Shown here one piece after another: positions 439 through 22,208 of a DNA stretch of 64,000 nucleotides. Origin of the DNA: Trichosphaerium sp. ATCC 40318 (lineage: Eukaryota; Protista; Tubulinea); the NCBI GenBank assembly GCA_038496445.1, contig JALMLS010000450.1:124001-188000 (forward strand), given 5' to 3'. Numbering within the stretch: the stretch's first letter is position 1; the number at the start of each line of letters is the position of its first letter. The translations under genes and the position numbers were made by a program. The notes beneath the pieces were generated by a model. The model was not told where the DNA came from, did not search any database, and was given only the letters and a program-made list of their open reading frames with translations.

Positions 439-3400
439 ATTTGGCATTGTTTGGGTTTTTGTTTTAAATCACGTGACGTAATTTCGCCTTGAATTTTTTT
501 TATAATTCTTCAATACTGGGTGGTTGGATTGAAAAATTGCGTAAATTACTATGTGGGTATCATTGCCCGTTTTTGTTGGGTATTTTTTGGGTAAAGGGAA
601 AATACTGTAGAACTCAATTACTTACCCCGTTCTACCATTTCATACTTTTCCATTTCTTTAGAACGGAAAATGGGTTTTTATCCAGAGCATCTACAATGTG
701 TACTGTAGCTTGTTACCAAATTTTCGCGTTGAGTTTCATAAACGTTTCTTTAGAATGGAAAGTGGGTTTTATCCAGAGCGTCTACAATGTGTACTGTAAT
801 GCGTTGCCAAAATTTCTGTGATTTCACGTGTTTCATAAATGCTGGAACGCCAAATGTCCTCATTTATATCTTGTGTGATCCATTTGTTGGTGCCCTTTAT
901 CCGCTATCATGAAGTGTTTGATAATCCAGAAACCTCCAGAATCTGTGGTTAACGGTTTTTGTGATACTTTGGTTAAATTCACACAAAAGATACGTTTATT
1001 ACAAATTGCTCTCTTCTGCGATGCACCTCATCTACGCTTTCTTTGTTATTTGTATTGTGTCTGCAGCTACAATGAGCTTCTCTGGTCAAGTTGCTGATGT
1101 CTCTTGCGGGTGAGAATCTTTTTTCTATGGTTATCAAATTATTTCTTTAGAAACAATGCTGGTACATGCTCAACACCGCCTCAGTTGTCTCCATTCTATG
1201 GGTTTAACGAACAACACTCAGCCACCTGTGTCAAGTACGATCTCTTTCAATAACACTACAACAAGCCTTACAGAACCTTAGAGGTGATACTGAAGCGAAC
1301 TACGTTACAAAAGACCTCACTGTGTCAACTGGAGGTTTCTATTTCATTTATGGTAAGACGGTGATTTGAAAAAAAACTGTCTTAGTTTTTTCTTTTTTAC
1401 TTTCTGCTATTTAAAAAACGCCATAGTATCTTTATCAACTCGCTTTTGTTTCTTGTTTACTAGATGTTCAGCATCTCTTGGTTCACGTACACGGTTTAAC
1501 TCTTTTTTTTTTAGTTCAAAGTTCTATTCAAATTGAGGCAAATATACACGTGATAATCTACGAAAATGGAAATTGGGATTGTAATTCTCCATGTGATAAT
1601 ATTGTATGGGCTATCACAGGCAATCCCTTAGGCCGTATGAATACCATCAAAAACATGTTCCCCGACTAATATTTGTCTTCTTTAGCCAAAACTACGGTGG
1701 GTACAATATGGATACCAGCCGGAACTCACAAAGTGTTAATAACATACGATACTGATCCTGATGAACCTTATACAGACTACAACGTAAATACTGGAGATGT
1801 AGGATTTCAAGGTATTTTTGTTGTTGAGATGACTCTTTCAGCACAAATGGACGCATTGATAAGCTACAACGCAACCAGCCCAATGAGAGAGTTTGATAAG
1901 GTTTGCAATGGTACAAATGGTACTCCGACTGCTCAATTCAAATGGACTGCTCCAAAGACTTCAGAGTATTCCATTGAGTTTGCAGGTGTAGTAGGAAATT
2001 CGAGGTACATTTAACAACCGGAGAACAATACTTGTTGTAACACTTTTTAGTACTCCTTACCCTACCATAAGCTATGGTACTTTTGATTCTGGTAAGGTGT
2101 ATGTTGCGGCTAGAGCTTTCGCTGTTGAAGGAGATCTTGGTGCCGATTGTGTATGTTTTCAAACTGATGCGTGTGGCACTGCTGTCAACCAGACTTCCTC
2201 TTTTGTACACATTCACGTAATAAGTAGTTTGTGATTAAGTTTTACTTTAGGCGATATCCCGTACAAATCCCACTTTCTCTTTGGAAGAAGGAAAAGAATA
2301 TACTTTTGTAATTGGTGATATTACATCTAATTTTATTAGTGTGCAAGACGGTAAGTTGGATTCAAGGTTGTGTCTTTGAAATTTCTCATTTTGTTTTTTA
2401 GTAATTGCAGGTGTTGTCATGGTAGAAGTACCTCCACCATTTACTGACGAGCCCACTTCATCAACTACAACTGTCCCTCCGTCTGAATATATACCAACTT
2501 GTGATGCCAAAAATAGACTTGGAGACACAGTACGATAGCTGTCTCTTTCTCTTTTTTTGTTTCACGTTTTCTTCTCATTATTTGACTAGCTGTGGCCAAA
2601 ACCACAATTTGTGGGAGGCAGTCAAATAAACAAGTGTGTAGCTACAGAACCGGAATACTGGAATGCATTGGTACGCTTGAAGAAAAATAAATCAAAGTAG
2701 ATATTGGCGTACCTTTTTAACAAAAAAATTCCAATAGAATGTTAACGCAACCACATCAGGATATCGAATCTTTAGAATAGAATACATTTCCAGTTCCCCA
2801 TGTCCAATTCTTAAAACATTCAATACTGTTTTGACATTATACAAAGGAGTCGTTGGCGGAGACGCTTTCGAGTCACGAAACTTCAGGTAAAGAAAACAAC
2901 AAAAAAACACGTTTTAGATATTTCGTATTTTTGGGAACCACAACTAACTTGTTTTATTAGTACATTGCCTCCTGTTTGCAATGCTGACTTTGTTGCAGTT
3001 GCTGAGTTTTCTCAATTGTTTGCATACATTCAACAAGGAGAACCATATACTCTCGTTGTCAGTGGAGACGATACCCAGGAAAATATGGTATTTGAGATTT
3101 CTGTTGTAACAGGGGAACTTACTGGTTGTGTTTCGACTCCAGTTACCCAACCGCCTACTGATCCACCCATTGTTTCGAGTCCAGTTACCCCTACTACTGA
3201 TCCACCCATTGTTTCGAGTCCGCCTCCTACTACTGATCCACCTACACCAACTCCTACGACCGAACCGCCTACTACTGAGCCTCCTGTATCGTCTGAACCT
3301 AGTTCAAGTTCACACATTGTTGTTGTTACTCTTGCGCTTGTAATGTGCCTTGCCACTTTACTGTTGTAAGTAGGGGGTACTTAATTAACACCAAATAAAC
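439..3400. repeat. Left arm of inverted duplication (partner about 8140-10820; related block about 19940-22780)
   Basis: Upstream region, exons and introns recur as reverse complement, e.g. aaatcacgtgacgtaatttcgc at 466 vs gcgaaattacgtcacgtgattt at about 10772 and 22586. Confidence 0.95.
1021..3369 (+). CDS. Predicted GPI-anchored surface protein, copy A (multi-exon)
   Basis: Signal peptide MHLIYAFFVICIVSAATMSFSG at 1021; GT-AG introns join ORFs 1478-1669, 1673-2014 and 2965-3369; Cys-containing beta-rich modules, P/T-rich stalk, hydrophobic end SSSSHIVVVTLALVMCLATLLL with no cytoplasmic tail. Confidence 0.85.
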
Positions 3401-3916
3401 ACAAGCATTGTTTATGTATGAGCTTTGTAAAAGAGTTTTATCAGTTCAATTCTATATTAAGATCCTTCTCATACTCGGGGAGGCAAACTGGTTAATTGGA
3501 TGGTATTCCATATGGAAACGAGTCAGCATCGGCAGCAAGGCATACACGAACAGCAGTTGAATTTTTTGAGTTGTGCTACCTACTTGACAATGAGTCCAGA
3601 AGCGAGTGATCGGTGTGAATACATAGCCAAAGTAGATTTAAGATAGTTTGCACTCGTGTAGCCACGTGGATGGAAGTGCCGTAGGACATCAACAAAATAC
3701 GGTAAGAGAAAGTGTGAGCTTGTCTTCCTACTAAAAAATCTACCTTAGAGGCTTTGGAATATGCGTCTTTCACATGCTTAAACAAGTAGGATACAAACAA
3801 TAAATAGGACACAGCAAATAAACATCAACTGCTTGTTAAATATTTGGACTTTATTTTTTACACTCAGTTTGCAAGTTATCAATACGCTTGGTTGCTGTGA
3901 GTATGTGGTTTTTTGG

Positions 3917-4543
3917 CTATCCAACAACATAATAGCTTCCACGTTCTTTGACTTGACGTTCCTCTGGGATACCATTTGTGTAATTTCTCCATTCTATTAT
4001 ATTACCAACAGAATCCCACCTCTTCAGTTCACCATGAATTTCGCCATTTACATAATTACAGACAATGCAATGACGATGTTTCTTCTTCCACCATTGTTCG
4101 TATTTTCCTTCTTTAAGACCATTCTTATAAGTACACTTAGTACTTAACTGCCCTGACGAGAACCATAGCTTGTAACTTCCATGTCTTTTGCCTTCTACAA
4201 AGGAACATTCCTCCATTATTTTTCCGTTTTTATGTAACTCAATAAAACTGCCATCAAGTACGCCATTCAAGAAATAAGCCTTTTTTATAAGATTACCTTT
4301 ATACCAACAGTAGAACTTTCCAGTTTTTTGAAGTGAGTTATTATATCTTGATGTTGTCGCTGTATATCTATTTAATAGTGGCCATACTATATAGCATTGT
4401 TTGTTGAACACTGTAATCATGTAATGAAGCTCAACGGGCAAGTCAAGGATGGTTAGTTTTTCTTCATCTTTTGAGTATGTTTTCTCCTCTGAGGATGTTA
4501 TAAAGGTTAAGTTATTAATGTTGTCATTTGATTTGTTGTTCAT
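3917..4543 (-). CDS. Intronless F-box-like + MORN-variant (MORN_2/YwqK-like) repeat protein
   Basis: TILDLPVELHYMI (F-box-like) then repeats NGVLDGSFIELHKNGK / EGKRHGSYKLWFSSGQ / NGLKEGKYEQWW / NGEIHGELKRWDSVGN; likely ATG at 4543. Confidence 0.8.
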   Translation of the reverse strand: MNNKSNDNINNLTFITSSEEKTYSKDEEKLTILDLPVELHYMITVFNKQCYIVWPLLNRYTATTSRYNNSLQKTGKFYCWYKGNLIKKAYFLNGVLDGSFIELHKNGKIMEECSFVEGKRHGSYKLWFSSGQLSTKCTYKNGLKEGKYEQWWKKKHRHCIVCNYVNGEIHGELKRWDSVGNIIEWRNYTNGIPEERQVKERGSYYVVG

Positions 4544-4881
4544 ATTGACAATGAAAGATATTCTAAAGAAAAAAGTCACGGCTTAACTCAACTTGAGAAT
4601 AAAACCAGAAAATAATTATCAAGAAAAGACGAGTGGCAAATCATACGCGCTCGCGTAAAGTACATCTATCGCTAGGAAAAAATAGCGTAAGTTACATTAA
4701 CCTTACTTCCTTTTCTATTTTGTAGGTGGTTGCTTGTAAATTTACAAAGTGAAGGTGTTTGACACTCAAACGGCGAAGGGTGAAGATTTAGAGTATGTAA
4801 TGACGATCAAAATTGGATACGTATTTTACCCACATTAATTTTTTCTAGCCAATTGATATGCTTATAATTAGTAAGCTGTAG

Positions 4882-7625
4882 TCAACGTTGCTTTGGTATA
4901 ACAACAAATGGATCTGTATAGTTTTGCCAAGTAAAATAAGAAAACGGATATTTTACCATCATAAAATCATCTAAATAATTAGTGGTGATAGTCAGTTTTA
5001 ATACTGTAAGGGTACGAAAGTTGGATATGGAAACTAACCTATTTATTAAGTACAGAGCGTTACAAATACGCAAGTTAGGTTTTAACCAGAAACAGCATAG
5101 TTTTATTACTTTTCAATCTAGTTATGTGATTTAAAAATCTTCTCTATATTTATACTTTTTTTCAGGAACAAAGAATAGAGGTAGTACAACTGCAAGAAGA
5201 ACAGCTCCAAATCCAAAATACATGGGTGTGTATGAGTGAGCAGAAGCATGTACTGCACTAACAATAGGAGGCGTAGCTACACTTGAAATACCAGCACCCT
5301 AAAAGATAAAATCAAAAAAATAAATTTCTCTTTTTTTTCTTTCTTTTTTTTTTCCGTACCAAAAGGACCCACGCGAAGTATATACCAAAATTCTTGTTAC
5401 CATATATCTGTGCAATGATCAAAGGAAATATTGTAACATAAACGCCAAACCCAGCACCTATAGGAACCTGTTAATTAAAAGAATTCGAAAAAATTGTTTC
5501 GTTTTGAGTAAGCCAAACATGGTTATGTATATGCGTACCATTTAATCCAAGAAGTACACCAAATAATGCAGTAGTAAATTTGTGTCGAAGTGTATTCAAA
5601 ACACCAAGTACAATGTAATTAACGCCAAAAATAAGAAGAGTAATCATTGAAAAATATTTGAATTTCAAGTAACCTCTACGGTCAAGAAAGTCGCTCACTA
5701 TGGCTGCTGTAAATCCAGAAGCAGCATTGGAGAACGAGAAAATGTTCTAAATAGATATCATAAGATGCTAGCAAACATAACCATTTGCAGTTTTCCCCGT
5801 GAAAAGTAGAAACAAAACAAACAAACAAATCGATATGATTTTCTTCTTCAATTTAAGGTGGTTTAAAGACTCCACGTGAGCCAAAATAAAGCGGGATAAA
5901 TGCCAAAGTTGCTTTCTCCGCATGTAATGTGGAGTGAATGTATTTGATTAATTGGTTTATCTTAGATTTTGAGCACGTGGGTAGAGGTTTTTTCAGAAAA
6001 TAAGAAAAAAGCAACCAAAGACAAAAAAAAAACCAAACTACAATCGTACCAAAAGAAGACCATCACTCCATTTATCATCGTTTGTATTCCCTTTATACTC
6101 AAACCACATTTGATCCGCAGAACCAAGTACAAGAACACAAGAACCAATAGCACAAGCATATGACACAAACAAAGGATAAAAATACCAGTGCTCAAAGATA
6201 GCAAACCCAAAACGTTTGAAGTATGATTGCTTTGGTTGTTTTTCTTTTGGAATAAGCGATTGCGCTTCTTGTCTTCTGGCGTAGTAAGCATCACGAAACT
6301 GAACAAAATTCATTAGTCACGTGATAAATTTTCCGAAAAAATGTGATGAGTACTAACCTGATTCCAAGCAAGACCTGATACGCCAGCAGTGTAAAAGACT
6401 ACGCAAACCAAACTCCATAGTCTTTTGAAGAAAAACAATTAGTTTTGTAGAAGAGCCAGGTTTATATTTTGTTCAGTGCTTCTTACCTCATGTAATTCCT
6501 CCAACATGAATGCTCAGTACATCCAGAAGAGTGTTTATATATGTTTGTTAAAAATACAGTGAATGACAGTGATAAAGACATGCAAACAGACCTACGGTAG
6601 AGTGAGTATTTGTAGTATGACATACGCTTTTTTTAAAAGTAGCAAATATATGGGCACAAAACTCCAACTTTCGTAAGTCTTGCAAGGAAGCGGAATAGGT
6701 TGATTAATTTAAAGAGAAAAAAACATGAAATTAAGTGATTGGTTTCGAAACAAGCCAAGAACTGATGGTTTTGAAAAAAAAAATAAATCGTACACAAGTG
6801 CCACTCCTGGACCTCCACCGTTTGATATCTTAATAACTGTTGCAAAAGCAGATAGAAAAGTCATACCTACAAGCGATATATTAACAACATAATCCGCTAA
6901 AATTACCCGAGTAACGTGCCTTGGCCAATACCAACAAAAGTGTAAACAAATACCATTAGCCCAAATAATTCTCTTGTACAAAAAGAAGCGGCCTGAAAAC
7001 CGCCAATAGTAAACAAGGCACCGATGAATAATGCACCAAGTGATCCTAGGTTATCATATACTATTCTAGTATTGTATTAAAGTCAAAAAGAAACGAAACA
7101 AGACAGAAACAAGCGAGAAAATGAATGTAACATTTCTCATTTCGTGAAAATTTTTCCAAAATAAAACAGCTTTAAAACGCTTTTGTACCCTCCTACAAAT
7201 GTAAATTGCATTCCTACCAGTCCAAACGCAACCAATAAGCTTAATTCTGTCCCTTTAGGGTTGAATCCAAAATCGTGGGCAATGTCAGTGCTGATGACAT
7301 TTGTTCCGTATACGGCTGAGCTATAAAGACGTAATTAGAGCGTTTAACCGGTATTTCTCACTACGAATTTATCAAATGTTACCTAACAAGTGTAACCATA
7401 GCACCGCTTACTACAACAAAGATCTAACGATAATAGGCATATTATTCAGGCGAATAAGTAAATTGGATTGCCTACTTGTTGTAAAATTGACAGCGGCGGC
7501 GTCTTTGAAACGCTCTTGTCTGTCGAAATACTATCAATGTCATTGACGCTACTGTAACGTTAATAAATTTATTCTTCGCCTACAACGCACTTAATGAGCC
7601 CGTCATCCTTTTGAATGTCTTCCAT
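4882..7625 (-). CDS. Major facilitator superfamily transporter (nodulin-like/OFA type), multi-exon
   Basis: Starts MEDIQKDDGLI; many hydrophobic exons (IFVVVSGAMVTLV, AVYGTNVISTDIAHDFGF, LYDNLGSLGALFIGALFTIGG, FYPLFVSYACAIGSCVLVL); ends DPFVVIPKQR*. Confidence 0.75.
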
Positions 7626-8160
7626 ACTCCCTTGGGTATATTTACCAGACCAAAATGGGAGCAAGAAAAGTGTTTGTAGTTTGTCAACTCCAAAAACAAG
7701 GTGTTGGTTGGCTTAAAGTTGGCAAATTTAAGGCTTGAGTCGCATGCTTTTTTGGTACTTTTACTTAATTTATTTTGTGCCTACTTGGTGTATATGTGAA
7801 CTAGCGCTTGAATATGTCATCACTAATTACAGTTTTCACAAGTACGAATTCGTCACGTTTTCAGTGTAACGCCTAATTTTATGCAAATTTCTTGAAGATT
7901 CAAGAAGTTTCCAACGATTCCATTTGCTCTTTCATCCACGTGACAACATGAAGCAACTAACAAAAGGCGGCCCACATCCTCTAATTTTACTAGTTAGACG
8001 ACATGCACATGCTCTAATTTTCTGATTTTAGACGATTGGCAGCGTACTTTACAGTCACGTGTTTTGGAAAACATAAAATATTACCATTCTGTTAATAGTA
8101 ATTTAAACGTAAAACAGCAAAAGATACTAATCAACAATGTTTGTGTTTATTTGTTGATGC

Positions 8161-10359
8161 TTACAACAGTAAAGTGGCAAGACACATTACAAGCGCAAGA
8201 GTAACAACAACAATGTGTGAACTTGAACTAGGCTCGGAGGGTACAGGAGGCTCAGTAGTAGGTGGAGGAGTTGGTACAATGTCACTAGGAGGGGCTGTAG
8301 TTGGTACAAAGACACTGGGAGGATCTGAAGTTGGAGGAGGAGTAACTGGATCTGGAAAACAACCAGTAGGTTCCCCTGTTACTACAGTAAGTGCAAATAC
8401 CATATTTTCCAAACTGTTGGTTGTATTAGATCCACTGATAACAAGAGTATGTGATTCTCCTTGCGGAATGTATACGGCCAAGTCAGAATTCTGAGTATTT
8501 GCAACAAAGTCAGCGCCAGCACTGGCGCAATCAGGAGGCAATGTACTAATAATACAAGTTAGTTGTGGTTTCCCAAAAATACAAAAATGTTTTGTTTTTG
8601 TTATCTTTACCTGAAGTCTCGCGACTCAAAAGCATCTCCACCAACATCTCCTTTGTATAATGTCATCACTCGGTTTAGTAAAAGTGGACATAGTCTCGAG
8701 AAGGCAAGTAATGGTAAGCTGAAGATTCGATATCCGGATGTGGAAACATCAACTTTCTATTTGTGTTTTTTGTTAAAATGTGGCCAATATCTAAATCGAT
8801 TTATTCTTTAAGCGTACCAATGCATTCCAGTTTACCATATATCCATCTGTACACTTGTTTAATTGACTGTCTTCCACAGATTGTGGTTTTGGCCACAGCT
8901 AGTCAAAAATTAGAAGAAAACATGAAAAAAATGGGAAAGAACGCTATCGTACTGTGTCTCCAAGTCTACTTTTGGCATCACAAAGTTGTTCAACTGGTGG
9001 AGCAGATGTAGTTGGTGGAGTGGGCTCGTAAGTAACTGGTGGAGGTATTTCTACCATGACAACACCTGCAATTACTAAAACAACAAAATAAGGTTTTTCG
9101 AATACTTGCAAACTTTGTTTACAACTTACCGTCTTGCACGTCAACACGAGTAATATCACCAATTACAAAAGTATATTCTATACCTCCTTCCAAAGAGAAA
9201 ACGGGATCCGCACGGTATGGGTCCTAAAATTAGAAATCAACCTACTGTTGTATTGAGTAATCTAAGTGAAACCGTACAAAAGTTGTTTGGTTGACAGCAA
9301 TGCCACAGTCATCAGTTTCAAAACATACACAATTGTCTCCAAGATCTCCTTCAACAGCGAAAGCGCTTTCCCCAATAAACGCAAGTCTCTTCTCATTTGC
9401 ACCAAATATACCATAGCTTACAGTAGGGAATGGAGTACTAAAGTAAATATGTTACCAAACAAACCAATGGATGAAACGTGCCTCGAATTACTGTATCCTA
9501 CTACACCTACAAACTCAATGAAATACCTTGAAGTCTTTGGAGCAGTCCATTTGAATTGAGCAGTCGGAGTGGTCGTATTAGTAGAGTTACAAGATACATC
9601 AAACTCTCTCATTGGGCTGGTTGCGTTGTAGCTTATCAATGCGTCCATTTGTGCTGTAGGAACTATCTCAACAACAAAAATACCTTGAAATCCTACATCT
9701 CCAGTAGTTGTGTTGTAGTCTGTATAAGGTTCATCAGGATCAGTATCGTATGTTATTAACACTTTGTGAGTTCCGGCTGGTATCCATATTGTACCCCGCG
9801 TGTCAGCTATAGAAAAGACAATTATTATTTGGAGCTTGTTTTGATATTACGCGTACCCTTATACAAGGAAGTGCCTCTGATACCCCATACAATATTATCA
9901 CATGGAGAATTACAATCCCAATTTCCATTTTCGTAGATTATCACGTGTATATTTGGATGAATTTGACGAGAACTGAGTGCTACCAACAAAACAAATTAAA
10001 TTCACTGCGCTTTAATTAAATCCATACCAGCAATATAGTAGAAACCTGCAGTTGACACAGTGAGGTCTTTTGTAACATAGTTCGCTTCAGTATCACCTCT
10101 AAGGTTCTGTAAGGCTTGTTGTAGTGTAATTGAAAGAGATCGTACTTAGCACAAGTTGCTGAGTTTTGTAGTCCAGAATTTGTTTCCACAGACAACTGAG
10201 GCGGTGTTGAGCATGTACCAGCATTGTTTCTAAAGAAATAATTAGATAACCATAGAAAAAAGATTCTCACCCGCAAGAGACATCAGCAACTTGACCAGAG
10301 AACCTTATTGTAGCTGCAGACACAATACAAATAACAAAGAAAGCGTAGATGAGGTGCAT
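8161..10359 (-). CDS. GPI-anchored surface protein, copy B
   Basis: Near-identical signal peptide, same exon structure and GPI-type C-terminus as copy A; ORFs 9418-9762 and 8161-8541. Confidence 0.85.
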
Positions 10360-11199
10360 CGCAGAAGAGAGCAATTTGTAATAAACGTATCTTTTGTGTG
10401 CATAAACATTCACAAATACCGTTAACCGATTCTGGAGGCTTTTGAATTATCAACACTTTGTAATAACTGATAAAACAGCGTCAACAAATGGATCACACAA
10501 GATATCAATGAGGACATTTGGCGTTCCAGCATTTATGAAACTCAACGCGAAAATTTGGTAACAAGTTACAGTATCCATTGTAGACGCTCTGGATAAAACC
10601 CATTTTCCGTTCTAAAGAAACGGAAAAGTTGAAATGTGGTTAAGTAATTGTTCTTACCCCTTTACCCAAACAATACCCAACAAAACTTACAGCGGACAAT
10701 GATACCCACATAGTAATTTACGCAATTTTTCAATCCAACCCAGTATTGTAGAATTTCAAAAAAAATTCAACGCGAAATTACGTCACGTGATTTAAAACAA
10801 ACACCCAAACTATGCCAAATGGTTTACTAAATACACTACAGGCACTGTTTTATAAACAGTTGGTAGCTACTTGCTTTATAAGCCAAGGTTTCGCGTAATC
10901 ACTGTTGATGGTGAGAGAGCGTAGGTAGATTGTAACTAGTCTTTGCCTTTTAGCGACTTAGCTCTATCCGGCTTTTGACAACCTAACTTCCTCGGCGAAC
11001 TGACGTTAATAACGCATGTGGAAACATATATTTTCTATTTGTGTTTTTTGTTAAACTGTGGCCTATCTAAATCGATTTAGTCTTTGTCGGAGCATAAGCT
11101 TAATTTAGCAGATAGTTGCGTAAAAAAGGGTACTAAATACAACTCTTTTTTTGAGTGCTTTTGTTGGTTACTGACGTTCTTTGATTCAAATAGGCAAAG

Positions 11200-12665
11200 C
11201 TATGCTTGAACCTACATATGGCGTACCAATAATTAGGTACGGTGTCGCGACAAGAACGAATGTAGAGTTGTACTCGTGCTGATGTTTTTTTGTAGATCTA
11301 CTATTGGCGATGAATGTGTTTAGAATTATTTCTTCAAACATAAATACATATGTCTCACCAGAGAGTGATTTAAACTTGAGGCAGCTGTACCTGCGCTTAA
11401 TGCAATGGTATGGGGGTTTTTAAAAACCACGTGCTACGCCAGAATGGCCATCGTTTTTTGAAAGATCTTTTTCTTCTTCTTTAGTGAAGTTTAACGCTCT
11501 TACATGCTCGGTGCCTTGACGCTAATGAATGATACTGAAAGGTATAGAATATCACAAACCTACAACGAAACTCTTGGAAAAGGAAAACTCACCGAAAAAT
11601 TAGTGCGGATGGCTCAAAATACGAAGCTATACCAGAAGGCGAAGAAGAGCCTATAGATAACTACGATGACCTTGACCTTGAAAAATAACTTGAAGAGTCA
11701 ATAACGAGAAGAAAAGACAGGCTGAGACATTAAAGATAAGGCTTAACAAGCTGTCTGGTGTTAACTGGACATCAGAACTCGAAAGACAACTTCTCGCAGA
11801 ATGGAAAGAGTACATTCTTTTTTTTTTCTCTTCTGTTTCATCTCATTGGCTGTTTTAGCTCAAAGGTTGACAATGAAGAAGATACCTTGTATATGATTAT
11901 TGCTGCATCATTCTTAGAGCAACTTCCTAATATTAGTGAAGGTCATGTCTTCAGGAAACTTCAAGAATTGGGTAACATACCAAAGGTAAGCACATATTTT
12001 TTTGTTAGTACTAGAGACTTCTTCTTACGATTTTTAAGGATGCATATATTCCTGATAGTGTTAGAGACCAGCTAGAATATATTGACGCGCAAGAGAGGAA
12101 AGTTCGAAAGGCTATGGAATTCTCAAGAGGCACGATAAAAATTATTGCCTGTTTTTTCTTGTTTTTAGTTCCAGTCGTTACGTATACTGCTAGGCATCCT
12201 CATCACGACGTTCAAGAAAATATAATAGTAAGAAGCGTAGCAGAGAGTCTCCACTTGATACACGCGGAGATATTGATATGGAAGATGAGGTATGTAGTAT
12301 TTCTTTCAAGCTTGTCTTTTTGCAAAAAGTGACTTAACTTTTTTTTGTTTCAGGAATCTGAAGGAGAAGCACGAAAAGCAATCTCTGATAAACTTCGTAA
12401 AACACATCAAAATATAGAGCGTGGACCAATTATTGTTCAACCTACAGAAGTTGAATCATCAGGGTACGATACAAATGCCAAAAAACCAAACATTAAAGTA
12501 AATACTAAAACGCAACGCAAACGAAACGATGGTTCTTCTGAGCCACAGAGAAACAAACGTAGGTTGCTGCGTAAGAGCATAGATGAATCAAACGCTAAGA
12601 ATGATGACTCTGATGATGAAGACATGCTAGGTGACTTAGATGCTATGCTTGATGATCACGGTTAG
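11200..12665 (+). pseudogene. Probably disrupted, 5'-truncated gene with acidic/basic C-terminus (possibly Timeless-like)
   Basis: Exon-like frames (LAMNVFRIISSNINTY, VNWTSELERQLLAEWK, ISEGHVFRKLQELG, DDSDDEDMLGDL) are interrupted by in-frame TAA (EV*RS, EK*LEES) and frame changes. Confidence 0.45.
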
Positions 12666-12773
12666 TTTTGGTTCTTTTTCTCTTGGAGTTTTGCATTGGT
12701 TGTCTCCTACTAAAACAACACCTGTATTTTATTCGAAAATGAATCTAGTCCCAACAAGTAGTATTTATTTGCA

Positions 12774-13495
12774 TTAAAGTACACATGGAGCATGATTGGA
12801 TGTACAACTATTGCCAGCGTTTTTGATGGTACTACTACAACAGTCGCCAGAACCTCCAGGGCGCTGGCTACAGCCAGTACCTCCACATGAGCCGCATGTT
12901 GATGGACAGCATACGTCATTAGCAGGATTGATTAGGCCTTGAGAGCATGTTGAATCGGCATAAGCACTATTCAATTTGGCTGAAATGTTCCAAGCTGCTT
13001 TGCCCCACGATGTCTTTTTGTTAAATCTAGCACCAGTACAGTCACCGTTGCCATTACCATCAATCCAGAACTTAGTTCCTGTGGCGCTTGGATAACCTCT
13101 GCTACCAATTTGGCACTCATCTTCGTAATCGTAGAACAAGTCACGGTCATTACCATACCTGTACGTCATCGTTAGTCAATGGTGTTTGCTACTTTAAAAC
13201 TCAAAGAAAAGAATAATAGGTACCATCTCATCTCCTGGATTTGAACACCGTCGCCTGTACACTTCTCGTCCGTGAATCCAATATACCTGTTACCGGAATA
13301 CCCTGTAGAAACTGGAGTACAGCAATAGGACGTGTATGTGTTTGTCGGAGTGAAAGAGCAACATTTACCAGAGTAGCACATAGTTATAGAGCACGCTGTT
13401 CCTGAGTCTCTTGTTCTTATACCGAACTCTCCACTGCTGCATACGCAATAGATAGAAGGAACGAGAATAAGGAGCAATAATAGAGCTATTTTCAT
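12774..13495 (-). CDS. Small secreted Cys-rich protein, two exons
   Basis: Signal peptide MKIALLLLLILVPSIYC; intron about 13171-13221; C-terminal module DVCCPSTCGSCGGTGCSQRPGGSGDCC...APCVL. Confidence 0.85.
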
Positions 13496-14211
13496 GATGT
13501 GTTGCTGATGTTGTATTGGTAGGTTGATATTTGGTATTTTTGGTTAGTAGAAAACTTCGAGAAAACTGCGTGTTTTGCGGCAACTTCGGCCGGCTTTGGT
13601 TAATGTCGGCCCAATAACTGCAGTGACAAAACATCCATACAGAATGCGGGACGCTTGACAAAAACCTAAAAATACGAACTACCACAAGTTATTTGGTGGA
13701 GTAAACTGAACGCTGTAGTTTGGTTATCAAGCGTTTTACAAGGTTTCAAGCTTCTTGTTGAGAAAGGGGAGCCTGTGGCTGTTTTTTTTTTGAGCTAGTT
13801 CCTCACGGAGTCTGCTCATGCCGCTTCGCTCAGTTTACGTAAACGTGCACACGTGTTGTGTGACAACATATTTCGGGATTTTCACGACTTGTCACGAAGA
13901 TTTTTTATGAAGAAGCGCTTTTTAACTACCAATAACGTCAACAGTAGACAACAATCGAGAGCTCTAAAACAATTATTTACAATAAAAGGCCAGTGTTGGC
14001 GACCGGCAATTTGAATTAGCTTTTTACGCTTCCACAAACACAAACCTTGCTTCGCTTCTCTTCGCATTACAAAAAAAACACGTGGATGCCTAGGCTTTAA
14101 TGTTATCTAATTCAGCAATACCAGCAACAAAACATGAGCCTTGTAGGAGAAGAGGCAAGTATTTCCTCGGCAATCTACTACTATACTTTCGCAACGTATT
14201 TTATCTAGACT

Positions 14212-14665
14212 ATAGATATACAGCGACAACATCAAGATATAATAACTCACTTCAAAAAACTGGAAAGTTCTACTGTTGGTATAAAGGTAATCTTATAAAG
14301 AAGGCGTATTTCTTGAATGGCGTACTTGATGGCAGTTTTATTGAGTTACATAAAAACGGAAAAATAATGGAGGAATGTTCCTTTGTAGAAGGCAAAAGAC
14401 ATGGAAGTTACAAGCTATGGTTCTCTTCAGGGCAGTTAAGTACTAAGTGTACGTATAAGAATGGTCTTAAAGAAGGAAAATATGAACAATGTGGAAGAAG
14501 AAACATCGTCATTGCATTGTCTGTAATTATGTAAATGGCGAAATTCATGGTGAACTGAAGAGGTGGGATTCTGTTGGTAATATAATAGAATGGAGAAATT
14601 ACACAAATGGTATCCCAGAGGAACGTCAAGTCAAAGAACGTGGAGGCTATTATGTTGTTGGATAG
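14212..14665 (+). pseudogene. 5'-truncated, frameshifted copy of the MORN-repeat gene
   Basis: Near-identical reverse complement of 3917-4373; lacks the F-box part; 1-nt deletion near 14490 (caatgtgg vs caatggtgg). Confidence 0.85.
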
Positions 14666-15069
14666 CAAAAAAAACCACATACTCACAGCAACCAAGCGTA
14701 TTGATAACTTGCAAACTGAGTGTAAAAAATAAAGTCCAAATATTTAACAAGCAGTTGAGATGTTTATTTGCTGTGTCCTATTTATTGTTTGTATCCTATT
14801 TGTTTAAGCATGTGAAAGACGCATACTGCAAAGCCTGGAAAGGAGTCAGAATCGGCAGCAGGCAAACATCATTTGAATTTTTTGCGTGTACTTGAGTTAT
14901 TAGTTGTGTTACCTACTTGATAATGAGTCCGGAAGCGGGTGATCAGTGTGAATGCATAACCGCGTTAGATTTAAGTTAGTTAGCAGTCATGTAGCCACGC
15001 GGATGGAAGTGCCATAGAACAACAAAATAGTAAGAGAAGTGTGAGCCTGGAATATCCAATCACCATGCG

Positions 15070-15512
15070 TAGTAGGCGGTTTGGTCGTAGGAGTTGGTGC
15101 AGGTGGATCAGTAGTAGGAGGCGGACTCGAAACAATGGGTGAATCAGTAGTAGGGGTAACTGGACTCGAAACAATGGGTGGATCAGTAGGCGGTTGGGTA
15201 ACTGGAGTCGAAACACAACCAGTAACTTCCCATGTTACTACAGAAATCTCAAATACCATATTTTCCTCGGTATCGTCTCCACTGACAACGAGAGTGTGTG
15301 GTTCTCCTTGTTGAATGTATGCAGACAATTGAGAAAACTCAGCAACTGCAACAAAGTCAGCATTGCAAACAGGAGGCAATGTACTAATAAAACAAGTTAG
15401 TTGTGGTTCCCAAAATCTAATTTGATTTATTTTTCTTCAAGCGTACCAATGCATTCCAGTATTCCGGTTTTGTAGCTACACACTTGTTTGCATCTTTTCC
15501 ACAAATTGTGGT
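15070..15512 (-). pseudogene. Internal fragment (copy C) of the surface-protein gene, A-like
   Basis: Reverse complement of about 2930-3270 joined to about 2600-2700; lacks the 5' exons, one internal exon and the GPI signal. Confidence 0.85.
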
Positions 15513-16057
15513 GTTGACTCTCAAAATAATCAAGTTGAGTTGACTATTGTTTCAACGCCTTTCAGTCAACCAAATGGATTGGTGATTCTGGTTTCCCTCT
15601 CAGAACAATCATAACAATCGTTGACAATCACCAATGCTAGTAACACTACCTCTCGCGCTGATTAAACACCCATAAAAATATAGTGTATCAATTAATCAGA
15701 ACAAAAATTACATAAATGGTTAGTTCATCTGCCAGCTTTCCCATGTACCAGTGCCTCCTTCAACATGGTACCATGCAACCTACCACTACAACGCCAGTTG
15801 CACCTTCTTCAGATATCAAGCGTATGTACACTGGAAACACATATTGCTGTACTCTTGCGTTCATACATGCAGTAGTAACACGTGTTGATTAAAAAAAAGA
15901 CAATGAATTCTTTTCAGCAGTACATAGTTACGTATCGAATGCGAAGATTTTTGCCTTCAGCGCTTATAATTGAACAATAACAAAACCATGCAACGTAAAC
16001 AAATCAATTGATAATTTATTTAATCTTTTTCATTTCTATGCTAGGTCGCTATGAGAT

Positions 16058-17837
16058 CTAATTATTAGGCTTTTTACAGCACTCAGTACAAGGGTACACC
16101 TTATCCGCATAGTAGCGCTTACTACATAAAATGTAAGTCATTTTTCACTCGTGTGAAAAAAACTATGTTAGAAATTTCCATCAGTGTTCTTACTTGCTGC
16201 CTTCATAGAAAGCTTTAAAAGCTTGACCTTGTGTTAGTCCATCTATTGTTATGACATCAAATTCGTTTCCGCAATGATGTACACAGGAGTCCTAGAACAA
16301 ATATTAACAAATGGTTTTTTATGACATTTCGAATAATCACTGCTCGTTCATTTGAAACACGGGACAATTTTTTTTTTGGTTTTTTAAGTTTTGTACCAGA
16401 AACATTGCGCTCTCTTTATTCACAAATGCCTTGTCAATGATAGATTTTAGCATAGCACCGTATTCGTTAATCAAAGTAACGTTTGTTGTTTGCAATATTC
16501 CAGGTCCAATTTGGTAGTGGTCGTACTGAGACTGTAGAGCAAATATAGGAGTTTTAATGAATGGTGCGATGTTCTATGAAGATTAAATAAATAGAATATT
16601 TGAATAGTAGTTGTAGAGGAAAAAAATCCAAGAAGCAAAAATAGAACCAACAACTAGTTGCCAGAAAAAGTCATGTACCTGAGAAAACATACAATAGTAC
16701 TCTTCACCAACATGTGCTGCCAAACATTCTTTACTACTGACTGAAACAATGTTAAGTACCAAGTTGGTTTATAAATCTGCACGTGCCTCCTGCCATGTTC
16801 ATATTCTCAAAAACCCATTTTTGAAAACTAATAAACCCACGCTTTCCTTGCACTTGCAAGAAAAATCCGCTGTCAGGCATACCTGAGTGCCACTTAGTTT
16901 GGTTTGTAGTATTTGATACCGCGTACCTCTCACTTTAGTGGCACTTGTAAAACTGTCCGCCCACCAGTCCACGTGCAGATAAGCGGCAACACCACCTTTG
17001 ATGAACATGTTAATTGTGTCAATAGGATTTCAGTTAGTACCTGCTGAACAACCTGCTATGACTACGTCAGTTGCGTTCTTGAGTCCCTTCTCCATAAGCG
17101 AACTCCTTATTGCTTCCAAATTACGAATACCTCGATACCAGCTAAACACAATAAGATTAAAACGAGGTAAAAGTATCCATACATTTTGGTGTTGTTTATC
17201 AACTTCGGCTCTTCAATGTACGATCCAAACGAACCTCCATCGCAATACATAAGATATCTACAATTGAAATGAGTGTCATTCATAAGCACAAAACAACGAA
17301 AAGCTTACACTTTGTTCCAATTGTACATGAGAGGATTTTGTTCCGGGTCACTGCTATAATACCCAGTATCCCAGTTATCTGTTGGCGGGTAGTTTTTGGA
17401 CGAACCCAAGTGATCTTTTTTTAATAAGTTTGTCACGTGATTTTTAGAAAGAAAGTTCAGACGTACTTTGTGCTCTTTCATAGCAGTCAGTATCCGAACC
17501 ACACCATCCGCCTCCTTGATGGAAAATCATCCTGAAAATACGTGAGAACTTTCTAAATGGAACAAAACGTTTAAAACTACAACGCCGTACCACTTTGATG
17601 CCCCAGAACCAGATCCTGGTACAATATAGTATGCTGGTGGAGAGCCGTCAAGGCACATCGCTCCAAATTCTATAGGCGCCTACCAAACACGTGTTAAATA
17701 ATAAAAATAGGTTAATAACCTACATTTGTTAATTTCGTTAACGTCCAAACTTGAGCTTCTGGTGTAGTGCGATCACTGTCGATAGCATACGCACTAACAG
17801 CTAATACCATAGCAAAAAGAGGTAAAAACCTGAGCAT
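16058..17837 (-). CDS. Pectin acetylesterase/Notum-family secreted carboxylesterase
   Basis: Signal peptide MLRFLPLFAMVLAVSAYA; motifs AMCLDGSPPAYY, QGGGWC, LGSS, NPLMYNWN, YCDGGSF, GCSAGG, PDSGFF, DSCVHHC. Confidence 0.92.
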
Positions 17838-18028
17838 TCTATATTGCGAAACCCTGTGTTTAAAGGCTAAAGTCAACAGAATAAATATGCAACCCCTTTC
17901 AAACGTGGTCAAAGATAATTATTGTCGACTTTCTAGAAACCGAGAATTTTCACAAAAAAATGAAAGGTCATTTATTGATAGCCAGCGCTTGTGCTACTAC
18001 AGTCTATCGTGGCGTAAGTAACTGAACC

Positions 18029-19439
18029 ATGCTACATACTTTAACAAATATACCAAAGTACACGTGACCTTAAATTGTTTTTATTGCCTTTTATTCTATT
18101 GCCACATGTACTGATCGCATTTTGCAGGCCAATCGAGTTGGTTTGTTTACCTACAGAAATATTATTTTGTATTTTATCTGTCTTGGGTAAACGTGATCGT
18201 ATTTCTTCAACGTTCGTATGTAAATTCTTTTCTACAATAATTATAAATCATTTGGGATATTACGAGGTTACTGTGACATCAAAGGAAGACTTTTCAAGAC
18301 TTTCTAAAAGTCCTTTGCTGAAAAACACAAAAGTTATTGTTGACAACCATACGTATACAGTAACTACAGATGACTTCAAGAATATCTCTGGTGTACATCA
18401 CCTAGTGATAGAAGACTTAGTTGAAGTAACAGATACTATGTTAGAACATATTACAGGCATACACTGTCTGGAACTACAGATCACAAGTGCGTCAAAGCTA
18501 ACATGTGGTGGATTTAAATCATTGTCGGGTGTTCATACAATAGACTTGGCTTATGGGCATTTTAAAGATGAATGGATTCAAGGCCTTTGTGACATCCATA
18601 CAGTTGATATTGCTGGTACAACTATATCTGATAAAGGTCTTGCAGCGCTATCTGGAGTTCACAGTATTGACATATCACGTTGCTACAGTATTACAGACAA
18701 AGGCGTTATTGCAAGTTCAGGCTACATACACAAGATAGAGTTAAATGGATGTACAATTACAGATGAAAGTATCAAGGCATTAACAAAGGTACACTCTATA
18801 TCTTTGATGGATTGTACGAATACATCAGATGAGGGCATTAAGTACTTATTAACACACAATCAAAAAACACTTACTATAAACAAAATAGTACTAAACAGTT
18901 GTGTGCAAATATCGAACAACACATTGAAGCTATTGGCTGGAGTACCATGTGTAGAGCTTGTTAATTGCACTCAACTACATGATGATACTCTGTCTTGTTT
19001 AGTAGGTGTACAGCATATTGATTTGTATCTTTGTAAGGCTATAACAAGTGATGGAATACAAAAGCTATCAGGAGTAAAAGTGATTGACATTTCAAAGCTT
19101 GATTGTGTTGACGATAGTACTTTAGCACCACTTGCAGGTGTCCAAACTATTATTCTCACGGATACCAAAATAACAGATAAAGGCCTTGGTTACTTGATAG
19201 GCGTTAAAATCATAATCCTTGATAACTGTGAGTATATCACTGACAAAGGTGTAAATCGTCTTGTTGGTGTTAAGAAGTTATCCTTAGAAGGCTGTTCACA
19301 AATCACAGATAGTGGCGTTGTTAGTCTAACATCCTTAGATCGTATTAATCATCTGTGTACCCAAATTACACAGAAGATGGTTGACTATCTTGTAACAGAA
19401 GATGTGTTTGACGATGAAGGCTTTTGGCCCAAGTTTTAG
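18029..19439 (+). CDS. F-box/leucine-rich repeat protein
   Basis: ATG 18029, one intron about 18058-18128; F-box LVCLPTEILFCILSVL..VCKFF; many GVHxxDxxxxxITDxGxxxL repeats. Confidence 0.9.
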
Positions 19440-19495
19440 ATGCTTCTACAAGACGTGGCTTGATTCTTAAAGTGTTTGTGTAAAGTTTAGGCACT

Positions 19496-19760
19496 AAAGT
19501 ATCAAAAAAAACCGTTAACCATAGATTCTGGAGGTTTCTGGATAATCAAACACTTCGTAATACTGATAAAACAGCACCAACAAATGGATCACACAAGATA
19601 TCAATGAGGACATTTGGCGTTCTAGCATTTTAGAAACTCAACGCGAAAATTGGTAACTCGGTACAGTACTTAGATGCTATGTATAAACCCACTCTGCATT
19701 TTAGAACCAGGGTATGTTATTGAGTTCTTTTTCCACTAGGCAAAAAATACCCAACAAAAC
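19496..19760. repeat. Orphan copy of the surface-gene upstream region
   Basis: Direct repeat of about 22260-22550 (aaaaccgttaacca.agattctggaggtttctggataat...gaggacatttggcgttc) with no gene attached. Confidence 0.85.
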
Positions 19761-19978
19761 TTAACAAGCAAAACCATTACCTGCACCAATTTGAATTAAA
19801 ACCCTAGCTTGTATCTGAAAACTAATCATGAAAGTAAGTATTCACATCTTACAAGAAACTATCAGTTAGATTTAGTGTTTTGTATCAATCACAGAGTTGA
19901 GTATTCTTAGACCACCAATTTAATATACATAAAATCAATCGTGTTGATGTTTATTTGGTGTTAATTTAGTATCCCTAC

Positions 19979-22208
19979 TTACAACAGTGTAGTGGCAAGA
20001 CACATTACAAGCGCAAGAGTAACAACAACAATGTGTGAACTTGCACTAGGAGGAGGAGTCACTGGGCTTGGAACACAACCAGTAAGTTCGCCTGTTACTA
20101 CAGTAAGTGCAAATTCCATATTTTCCAAACTGTTGGTTGTATTAGATCCACTGATAACAAGAGTATGTGGTTCTCCTTGCGGAATGTACACTGACAATTG
20201 AAGCATATCACAATTTGCAACAAAGTCAGCGCCAGCACTGGCGCAATCAGGAGGCAATGTACTAATAATACAAGTTAGTTGTGGTTTCCCAAAAATACAA
20301 ATATGTTGTGTTTTTGTTATCTTTACCTGAAGTCTCGTGACTCAAAAGCATCTCCACCAACATCTCCTTTGTATAATGTAAACACATACGGTCCTAAAAT
20401 AGGACACATACTGTCACTTATGAAGCTTGATCTGAAGATTCGATATCCGGATGTAGAAACATCAACTTTCTATTTATGTTTTTTGTTAAAATGTGGCAAT
20501 GTCTAAATTGATTTATTCTTTAAGCGTACCAATGCATTCCAGTTTACCATATCTCCATCTGTGCACTTGTTTAATTGACTATTTCCCACAGATTTTGGTT
20601 TGGACCACAGCTAGTCAAAAATTTAGAAACACAAAACAATTAACAAAAAGAGAAACAGCCAGCTATCGTACTGTGTCTCCAAGTCTATACATGGTATCAC
20701 AAGGTGGAAGATTTGTAGGCGGTGAGGTAATAGGTTCAGAAGGCTCAAATGGCGCGTAAGTAACTGGTGGAGGTACTTCTACCATGACAACACCCGCCAT
20801 TACTAAAAAAACAAAATAAGGTTTTTCGAATACTTGCAAACTTTTGTTTACAACTTACCGTCTTGCGCGTCAACACGAGTAATATCACCAATTACAAAAG
20901 TATATTCTTTTCCTTCTTCCAAAGAGAAAGTGGGATTTGTACGAGATCGGTCCTAAATTAGAAATCAATCTGCTGTTGTATTGAGTAATCTAAGTGAAAG
21001 CGTACATTCCTTGTTTGGTTGACAACAATGCCACAGTCATCAGCTTGAAAACATACACAATTTGCTCCAAGCTCTCCTTCAACGGCAAAAGCCTTAGCTG
21101 CAATATATTCGAGTCTCTTCAGATTTTCAGAAAGGACCCAATAGCTAAATAAGCCATAGTTTACATTAGGGAATGGAGTACTACAGTAAATATGTTACCA
21201 AACAAACTCTTTTACAGCATTTGCAAAACTTGCCTCGAATTTCCGTAATTACTGTAACCTACTACACCTACAAACTCAATGAAATACTCTGAAGTCTTTG
21301 GAGCAGTCCATTTGAATTGAGCAGTCGGGGTGGTCACATTAGTAGAGTTACAAGATACATCAAACTCTTTCATAGGGCTGGTTGCGTTGTAGCTTATCAA
21401 TGCGTCCATTTGTATCGTAGGAACTACCTCAACAACAAAAATACCTTGAAATCCTACATCTCCAGTATTTACGTTGTAGTCTGTATAAGGTTCAGCAGGA
21501 TCAGTATCGTATGTTATTAACACTTTGTGAGTTCCGGCTGGTATCCATATTGTACCCTGTGTAGTTCGGGCTAAAGAAAACAAATATTAGTCGGGGAACA
21601 TGTTTTTGATGGTATTCATACTGCCAAAGAATCTTCCTCTGCCTGTGATAGCCCATAAAATATTATCACATGGAGAATTACAATCCCAATTTCCATTTTC
21701 GTAGATTATCACGTGTATATTTTCCTCAATTTGAATAGAACTGTGAACTAACAAAAAAAAGAGTTAAACCGTGCATGTGAACCAAGAGATGCTGAACATC
21801 TAGTAAACAAGAAACAAAAGCGAGTTGATAAAGCTACTAACTAAGACAGTTTTTTTTCAAATCACCGTCTTACCTTCAATGAAGTAGAAACCTCCAGTTG
21901 ATATAGTGAGGTCTTTTGTAACGTAGTTCGCTTCAGTATCACCTCTAAGGTTCTGTAAGGCTTGTTGTAGTGTTATTGAAAGAGATCGTACTTGACACAG
22001 GTGGCTGAGTGTTTTTCGTTAAACCCACCATAGAATGGAGACAATTGAGGCGGTGTTGAGCATGTACCAGCATTGTTTCTAAAGAAATAATTAGATAACC
22101 ATAGAAAAAAGATTCTCACCCGCAAGAGACATCAGCAACTTGACCAGAGAACCTTATTGTAGCTGCAGACACAATACAAATAACAAAGAAAGCGTAGATG
22201 AGGTGCAT
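19979..22208 (-). CDS. GPI-anchored surface protein, copy D (short stalk)
   Basis: Same signal peptide and exons; ORFs 21212-21583 and 19979-20257; stalk reduced to PSPVTPPPS. Confidence 0.85.

Follow-up and report, generated by a model that had tools for sequence, protein, structure and literature searches.

Gene conversion among clustered paralogues of a putative surface-protein family with variable loops in a marine amoeba

In the window (the whole stretch of 64 kb of DNA analyzed here) lie genes A, B and D, each intact and of 11 exons, plus a shortened relic, C, of a family that probably codes for secreted, putatively GPI-anchored surface proteins, the surface location being suggested by sequence features. 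The copies combine related frameworks with short and strongly divergent segments, and this framework/loop contrast stems largely from gene conversion between the paralogues. The explanation that we consider best, and that we favor with moderate confidence, is a small surface-protein family homogenized by conversion in which weakly constrained loops have diverged.

Gene copies and gene models

Gene A is found on the forward strand at 1021-3369 (567 codons), with exons 1-6 at 1021-1109, 1151-1234, 1282-1352, 1515-1634, 1686-2004 and 2051-2204 and exons 7-11 at 2251-2350, 2402-2529, 2590-2670, 2738-2886 and 2961-3369. Gene B is on the reverse strand at 8161-10359 (559 codons), with exons 1-6 at 10271-10359, 10146-10229, 10028-10098, 9857-9979, 9482-9806 and 9278-9437 and exons 7-11 at 9130-9223, 8953-9074, 8818-8898, 8611-8756 and 8161-8545. 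Gene D, also of 11 exons and on the reverse strand, spans 19979-22208 (538 codons). A fourth close copy, E (524 codons), is located on the same contig 95 kb upstream, outside the window. Together with four distant paralogues on other contigs, the family amounts to 8 genes and one relic. The positions that the earlier note had given for A, B and D are correct and the four peptide contrasts that it quoted are present in the sequence, the last residue of the second loop of A being intronic in the new gene model.

The models of A, B, D and E were obtained by a dynamic-programming search over GT/GC-AG sites in which no in-frame stops were permitted. All four have a single open frame of 11 exons with conserved splice sites, and a GC-AG intron 5 is required in B, D and E. 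For intron 2 we rejected a length of 38 nt (in-frame stop in E) and one of 44 nt (GC donor needed in B); 47 nt fits the four close copies, and the junction of the distant paralogue P0001 agrees. P0001 and a second distant paralogue, P0002, are identical in every letter to MMETSP transcripts, which confirm an exon structure homologous to the 11-exon models of the A group. They are the two of the eight paralogues present as MMETSP transcripts; a search of the same transcripts found none for A, B, D or E.

Relic C (15069-15516, reverse strand) is a truncated copy. In it, the counterpart of A 2597-2707, which is 87% identical and covers exon 9 with the first part of intron 9, is fused directly to the counterpart of A 2929-3275 (the end of intron 10 and exon 11 up to the stalk; 97% identical), and the relic has neither exons 1-8 and 10 nor a C-terminal tail. 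The relic belongs to an inverted duplication that includes the adjacent MORN-repeat gene (3749-4371 corresponds to 14212-14836). Beyond the eight genes and the relic, no donor cassettes or further coding-exon fragments came up in genome-wide searches at the DNA and protein level. When the DNA of A, B and D was used as donor-cassette query, nothing matched apart from family members and two small repeats in introns, and the large silent donor archive expected of an antigenic-variation system was not found genome-wide.

Predicted protein architecture

The predicted product of each gene starts with a signal peptide, followed by a cysteine-rich ectodomain of all-beta type, a Pro/Thr stalk that differs in length between copies, and a hydrophobic tail at the C-terminus. 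By inspection, the N-terminus is hydrophobic in all six proteins considered (A, B, D, E, P0001 and P0002) and coincides with a helix at residues 2-15 in the AlphaFold models of the paralogues. The putative signal peptide of A is encoded at 1021-1071 (forward strand), and the exon 1 DNA is 95-100% identical in B and D. Sixteen cysteines are conserved. Exon 8 codes for a Pro-rich linker between domains, the length of which varies (A 2443-2496, forward strand; B 8986-9033; D 20705-20761); its pLDDT was <50 in both AlphaFold models. The Pro/Thr/Ser-rich stalk occupies 3148-3297 in A (forward strand) and a shorter stretch, 8233-8340, in B, while D has hardly any. The lengths are about 50, 36 and 2 residues respectively, which bears out the claim that stalk length varies, and a 39-nt repeat array of 2.9 copies at 3129-3242 overlaps the stalk of A. 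In A, the C-terminal tail (3298-3366, forward strand) begins with a run of small residues and closes the protein with about 18 hydrophobic ones; it is nearly identical in A, B and D. The tail looks like a GPI-attachment signal. By inspection, the six proteins fit this pattern (small residues, short spacer, terminal hydrophobic stretch, no cytoplasmic tail). A putative signal peptide and a GPI-type tail in these six proteins support the surface-protein family proposed in the earlier note.

Variable segments

The amino-acid differences are concentrated in about 14 short segments, located between predicted strands. The clustering is beyond chance (dispersion index 1.6-2.4, permutation p about 2e-4), in agreement with the sharp variation in short loops described before. 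Per pair, 8-9 ten-residue windows had at least 6 differences and 11-14 had none. Segment 1 (A 1191-1214, forward strand, residues 44-51; B 10166-10189; D 22012-22038) is a loop between two conserved cysteines. There, A resembles D and B is unrelated, even though the introns on both sides are identical; the version of B, about 50% identical, is set between two introns that are 100% identical. Segment 2 (A 1619-1693, forward strand, residues 117-124; B 9802-9875; D 21563-21643) runs from the end of exon 4 across intron 4 into exon 5. Its length varies by whole codons and the splice phase is preserved in the four copies. At the start of exon 6, segment 6 (A 2073-2108, forward strand, residues 236-247; B 9371-9415; D 21099-21158) has 12 residues in A, 15 in B and 20 in D. 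Segment 11, in exon 10 (A 2777-2830, forward strand, residues 396-413; B 8667-8717; D 20383-20430), has about 17-18 residues and encloses a cysteine that A, B, D, E, P0001 and P0002 all share. Segment 13 is found in exon 11 (A 3001-3018, forward strand; B 8479-8496; D 20195-20212).

A mosaic produced by gene conversion

The near-identity of frameworks and introns that had been described for A, B and D holds in particular tracts, such as introns 1-2 with 0-1 mismatches, but not overall: frameworks are 69-75% identical, and introns 3-6 of A and B have 35-50% mismatches. Tracts of 97-100% identity span exons and introns alike. Gene D is a mosaic that resembles A on the 5' side of about position 1800 and B on the 3' side. 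The main recombination or conversion breakpoint was placed at 1788-1831 (forward strand), within exon 5, with a maximum chi-square of 111.7 (permutation p<0.0005). To the left of it, the sites shared by A-D and by B-D were 84 vs 12, and to the right 60 vs 184. In addition, exon 8 of D ends in a patch that resembles E. The old pair P0001/P0002 provides a reference: in it, the columns of the variable segments had 37% vs 51% identity (p=0.019). Since conservation of these columns is only a little lower in P0001/P0002, the sharp contrast between framework and loops comes from recent homogenization. A tract converting both flanks should convert the loop too, so that the divergent islands need either tracts that halt at heterology or selection against loop homogenization.

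Substitution rates

In the variable segments dN/dS was 0.9-1.65, that is, about 1. Among A, B and D, the dS values of these segments were 0.48-1.0 vs 0.11-0.18 in the framework, 3-5-fold higher. Framework dN/dS was 0.32-0.36 against E and 0.5-0.75 among A, B and D, reaching 0.94 at the highest. When strands and loops were defined independently from the AlphaFold model, loop dN/dS was 0.43-1.0. A neutral simulation in which loops were chosen by the same column selection gave values of 0.74-1.37. With a segment dN/dS of about 1, raised dS and such a neutral range, the diversifying selection proposed in the earlier note is not demonstrated. Actually, the comparison of A, B, D and E gave no dN/dS >1 at loop sites beyond the effect of column selection. 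In a few ungapped short loops, chosen post hoc, replacement changes exceeded silent ones 2-3 fold. The earlier note had named a loop dN/dS at or below 1, with divergence matching that of the introns, as evidence against its proposal; the ratio is indeed about 1, but loop divergence is far above that of the homogenized introns.

Structure models and homology searches

The AlphaFold models are of paralogues and have pLDDT 52-55 and pTM 0.35, the fold and loop assignment being tentative. For folding, only well-placed alignment rows were used as input and exon 11 was re-cut; the alignment of P0001 and P0002 with single-exon translations scattered exons 2 and 6-11. Both models are all-beta and the variable segments map to non-strand, low-confidence stretches. 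Residues 37-171 of P0001 align with CBM35/36/6/4 and collagenase PPC jelly rolls (VIA-align, Z 6.4-7.7, rmsd 3.1-4.0 over 91-124 residues), for a model of pLDDT 55 and with Z 7-8 being typical even without a true relative. ESM Atlas leads pointed in the same direction, toward jelly-roll/PPC folds, all with scores <0.8, and the family profile gave weak matches to bacterial proteins, at least one of them with a PPC domain. The Pfam scan of P0001, P0002 and the exons found no family at or above the gathering score, PF04151 included. Foldseek with the whole model gave a TM of at most 0.27, and neither the PDB profile search nor the word search among proteins returned a usable match. Homology between the three internal modules was not significant (hhalign, E 0.05-0.12 over 9-22 columns). 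Sequence searches found no homologue outside the source organism, and by this evidence the family is previously undescribed and restricted to it.

Origin of the framework/loop contrast

According to the explanation that we favor, this would be a small lineage-specific family, with four close genes on one contig and four distant ones elsewhere, whose products may be cell-surface glycoproteins. The protein would have a signal peptide, two or three cysteine-stabilized beta-sandwich modules, a mucin-like Pro/Thr stalk and a GPI-type anchor signal, and the first module, as modelled, may resemble the jelly rolls of CBM and pre-peptidase C-terminal (PPC) domains. Exchange between copies, by gene conversion or unequal recombination, would make whole tracts, introns included, nearly identical. 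Purifying selection would hold the strands and cysteines, while the inter-strand loops would be under little constraint (dN/dS about 1), accept in-frame indels and survive, between converted tracts, as islands of greater age and strong divergence. The outcome would be paralogues with a common scaffold and differing loop surfaces. The family possibly acts in adhesion or recognition, perhaps by lectin-like binding of prey or substrate glycans, and different loops may confer different binding properties.

Rather unlikely, in our view, is a true diversifying recognition repertoire, in which positive or balancing selection would keep the loops of a putative ligand-binding face distinct (against prey, pathogen or self) and conversion would shuffle the variants. 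The sharpness of the islands within tracts of 97-100% identity, introns included, argues for it, and so does the 3' half of B and D, where the homogenized introns differ at 9 of 233 positions and the loops, with pN and pS about 0.32-0.34, are some ten times more divergent. Measured against E, the variable segments have a dN of 0.92-1.08, roughly double the intron K of 0.44-0.49, and segments 3, 10 and 13 have replacement changes with few or no silent ones (6-10 and 0 in segment 13). Besides, loops are reassorted among copies, and the transcript collection holds only a quarter of the paralogues. Still, the pooled segment dN/dS is within, or at the edge of, what neutrality predicts given the column selection, and the loop class does not exceed 1. 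Divergence at silent sites is raised to the same degree in the segments, and this indicates age or replacement rather than faster amino-acid change. One divergent island is intronic (intron 8, 16 of 54 positions between B and D), and the family is very small, with no donor archive. A stronger version, that the cluster is a working repertoire with a distinct lectin-like loop surface per paralogue, selection blocking loop erasure and a subset of copies expressed per time or life stage, we regard as clearly less probable. If true, it would be an innate prey/self discrimination system on an orphan beta-sandwich scaffold.

It is improbable that the pattern reflects artefact or decay, the variable pieces being mis-called intron or A, B, D and E being silent copies that drift to pseudogenes. 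In its favor are the lack of any transcript or protein of the A group among 15 billion proteins, the high framework dN/dS among A, B and D, the several variable segments that adjoin splice sites, the GC-AG intron 5 needed in B, D and E, and relic C, which shows that copies do decay. However, each of the four genes has an open frame, of 524-567 codons, and retains all its splice sites, and all 22 gap blocks in coding DNA are in frame as against 30% of those in introns (23 of 33 are not multiples of three). The cysteines are conserved, the framework dN/dS against E is low, and in the paralogues verified by transcripts the homologous segments belong to exons.

Comparison with known systems

With this locus, an undescribed family of probable surface proteins, restricted to one organism, is added to what is known of the genome of a little-studied marine amoeba. 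The locus also provides a worked example, and a caution, of how gene conversion between paralogues can yield a constant framework with hypervariable loops without demonstrable positive selection. If the loops prove to be selected or differentially expressed, the family would be a compact system for studies of recognition in amoebae.

With CBM6/35/36/4 and the bacterial PPC/collagen-binding domain (PF04151) the likeness is that the modelled N-terminal module can be aligned, at Z values below 8 that are common and with a low-confidence model; there is no Pfam match at threshold and the family is otherwise an orphan by sequence. Among amoebozoans, the Gal/GalNAc lectin gene families of Entamoeba have undergone gene conversion that produced mosaic genes and unusual dS (PMC3125142). 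They are likewise surface-protein paralogues with conversion mosaics, but the proteins are unrelated and belong to a parasite under immune pressure, whereas the family described here is from a free-living marine amoeba. The tgrB/tgrC allorecognition family of Dictyostelium shows recombination among duplicates and mosaicism, and strains differ in its alleles, a polymorphism for which there is evidence of selection (PMC13648343). It is again an amoebozoan surface gene family with recombining, mosaic duplicates. In our case, however, paralogues of one genome were compared and dN/dS was about 1, there is no IPT/TIG Ig-like Pfam match, and a GPI-like tail takes the place of the transmembrane segment and cytoplasmic tail of Tgr.

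The fungal GPI-anchored adhesins Epa, Flo and Als have a signal peptide, an N-terminal beta-sandwich with variable loops that determine specificity, a Ser/Thr/Pro stalk varied by repeats and a GPI signal, and their genes are clustered paralogues reshaped through recombination and gene conversion. The amoeba family has no sequence or Pfam relation to them and no PA14 match. Unlike them, it has two or three modules before the stalk and comprises 8 genes, in an amoeba. In architecture and in the genomics of clustered paralogues, both are alike.

Surface-protein genes and their relatives

The window has a GC content of about 37% and short GT-AG introns, and is eukaryotic DNA. Repeat finding and alignment within it revealed one gene in three full copies, A (1021-3369, + strand), B (8161-10359, - strand) and D (19979-22208, - strand), plus a partial copy, C (15069-15516, - strand), a relic without exons 1-8, exon 10 and the tail. 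We searched the genome assembly (70.3 Mb, 642 contigs) and found another close copy, E, on the window's own contig (C71, of which the window is 124001-188000) some 95 kb upstream, together with four distant paralogues on contigs C112 (locus L022), C333 (L023), C181 (L024) and C84 (L025), with 32-39% identity to A in exon 5. A reservoir of donor fragments was not found in the 642 contigs.

Gene models were built by searching for GT/GC-AG sites near the boundaries mapped by alignment, disallowing in-frame stops. An 11-exon structure with an open frame is common to all four close copies (567 codons in A, 559 in B, 538 in D and 524 in E). A profile of exon 5, built from all eight paralogues and run against 1.84 billion representative proteins, had real matches only to P0001 and P0002, both MMETSP transcript proteins, and the C112 and C333 loci match these two letter for letter over 10 exons. 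This exact mapping confirmed the homologous splice pattern and fixed a doubtful exon 2/3 junction. The extra intron of the close copies is intron 6; in A, B and D it contains in-frame stops. Intron 5 (2005-2050 in A, 9438-9481 in B, 21181-21233 in D) has a GT donor in A and, provided that the models are correct, GC at the homologous position in B, D and E, making it a GC-AG intron there. Transcripts of A, B, D and E were not found in the collections searched. Since the MMETSP transcripts correspond to the C112 and C333 paralogues only, with none for C181, C84 or the close copies, the data suggest that expression in culture is limited to part of the family.

Each copy starts with an N-terminal signal peptide, after which two cysteines enclose a short loop. 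The ectodomain is all-beta, with 16 conserved cysteines and a Pro-rich internal linker; internal homology between its modules was not significant. The Pro/Thr/Ser stalk that follows the last module varies in length, with about 50 residues in A, 36 in B and 2 in D, and in A it carries 2.9 copies of a 39-nt repeat. The protein ends in small residues and then some 18 hydrophobic ones, a tail that, judged by its sequence, looks like a usual GPI-attachment signal. Nothing significant was obtained for the family from Pfam, a profile search of the PDB or the ESM Atlas. P0001 and P0002 were modeled with AlphaFold from shallow alignments of paralogue exons; the models were poor (pLDDT 55 and 52, pTM 0.35), and their all-beta strand patterns agree. 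Residues 37-171 of the P0001 model aligned to CBM35/36/6/4 and collagenase PPC jelly rolls with Z values of 6.4-7.7, within the stated background range of the tool; weak family-profile matches to bacterial proteins, at least one with a PPC domain, point in the same direction. These genes form a real family that is new at the sequence level.

Mosaic structure of the close copies

Sliding-window identity showed that A, B and D are mosaics. From exon 1 to exon 3 the three are 97-100% identical, except for segment 1 of B, the loop between the two cysteines (1191-1214 in A). Between the end of exon 3 and position ~1800, identity is 93-100% for A and D and only 50-70% for B; starting at ~1870 and continuing through the 3' end, B and D are alike (85-100%) and A is the one that differs. 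The switch was placed at 1788-1831 by a maximum chi-square test (p<0.0005): to its left the sites shared by A and D number 84 vs. 12 for B and D, and to its right 60 vs. 184. Besides, the end of exon 8 in D matches E, and the exon 9 loop is common to B, D and E. Intron divergence is bimodal, in step with this mosaic. The near-identity of frameworks and introns described in the earlier note holds inside the mosaic tracts, as in introns 1-2 (0-1 mismatches), and fails elsewhere, introns 3-6 of A and B having 35-50% mismatches. Between B and D, introns 6, 7, 9 and 10 together have 9 mismatched positions in 233, and intron 8 has 16 in 54.

Variable segments and selection

The positions at which the A, B and D proteins differ are strongly clustered (permutation p ~2e-4): they lie in some 14 short segments, in the linker and in the stalk. 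The four peptide contrasts that had been quoted from these genes are all present in the sequence, and every segment corresponds to a non-strand and/or low-confidence stretch of the P0001 model. None of the 22 coding gap blocks shifts the frame, while 23 of the 33 intron gap blocks are not a multiple of three, indicating that the segments are coding and that the genes have been kept open by selection.

The same loops had been read as CDR-like and under diversifying selection, which the tests run do not support. Framework dN/dS was 0.32-0.36 in comparisons with E and 0.5-0.75 between A, B and D themselves. The variable segments gave dN/dS values of 0.93-1.65 and pN/pS of 0.95-1.38, and a neutral simulation in which segments were picked by the same rule reached pN/pS of 0.74-1.37 at comparable divergence. 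When the classes were set independently from the strands of the poor AlphaFold models, strands had a dN/dS of 0.31-0.80 and loops one of 0.43-1.0. A few ungapped loops have replacement changes only, in small counts and in loops chosen after the fact. dS was 0.48-1.0 in the segments vs. 0.11-0.18 for the framework of A, B and D. In P0001/P0002, an old pair, conservation is only mildly lower in the segment columns (37% vs. 51% identity, p=0.019), so that the sharp contrast results from recent homogenization of the framework. The loops behave as older islands, nearly unconstrained. Positive selection on them is possible, and the best argument for it is how sharply some of the islands stand out within identical tracts.

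Repeats and neighboring genes

Positions 2597-4371 and 14212-15516 form an inverted duplication (~1.8 kb) that takes in the 3' end of gene A along with the adjoining MORN-repeat gene (first copy 3917-4579, - strand; second copy, ORF 14100-14534, + strand); its surface-gene copy is the truncated relic C. In B (8737-8808) and D (20432-20497), intron 9 is largely made up of an element of about 70 nt that extends over the first bases of exon 10. The element is also found in an intergenic position at 11013-11085 and on another contig of the assembly (C176, 35262-35333), with 88-93% identity, and could be a small repeat that is mobile or associated with introns. Intron 3 measures 162 nt in A, 126 in D, 48 in B and 59 in E. 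As the extra sequence (1362-1484 in A, present also in D) matches another place on C71 (42463-42587, 84-92% identity), a repeat seems to have been inserted into intron 3 of A and D.

A solitary 5' flank of the surface genes lies at 19507-19684, between the 3' end of D and an F-box gene with many LRR_6 repeats by Pfam (18075-19439, + strand, an intronless ORF of 454 codons). Compared with 830-960 (opposite strand) this flank has 89% identity, and with 10465-10588 about 75%; it is probably the remnant of a lost surface-gene copy. Two adjacent ORFs at 12774-13495 (- strand) code for a small cysteine-rich protein with a signal peptide and no match in Pfam, which may be another secreted orphan.

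Comparison with known systems

Evolution of this kind, in which the scaffold is converted, the loops are free and the stalk varies, is familiar. The closest systems in architecture and mode of evolution are the fungal GPI adhesins, the Entamoeba lectins and the Dictyostelium tgr genes, none of them related in sequence. The fungal adhesins are comparable in both respects. Gene conversion is found in the Entamoeba lectin families (PMC3125142), and recombination among duplicates in the Dictyostelium tgr family (PMC13648343).
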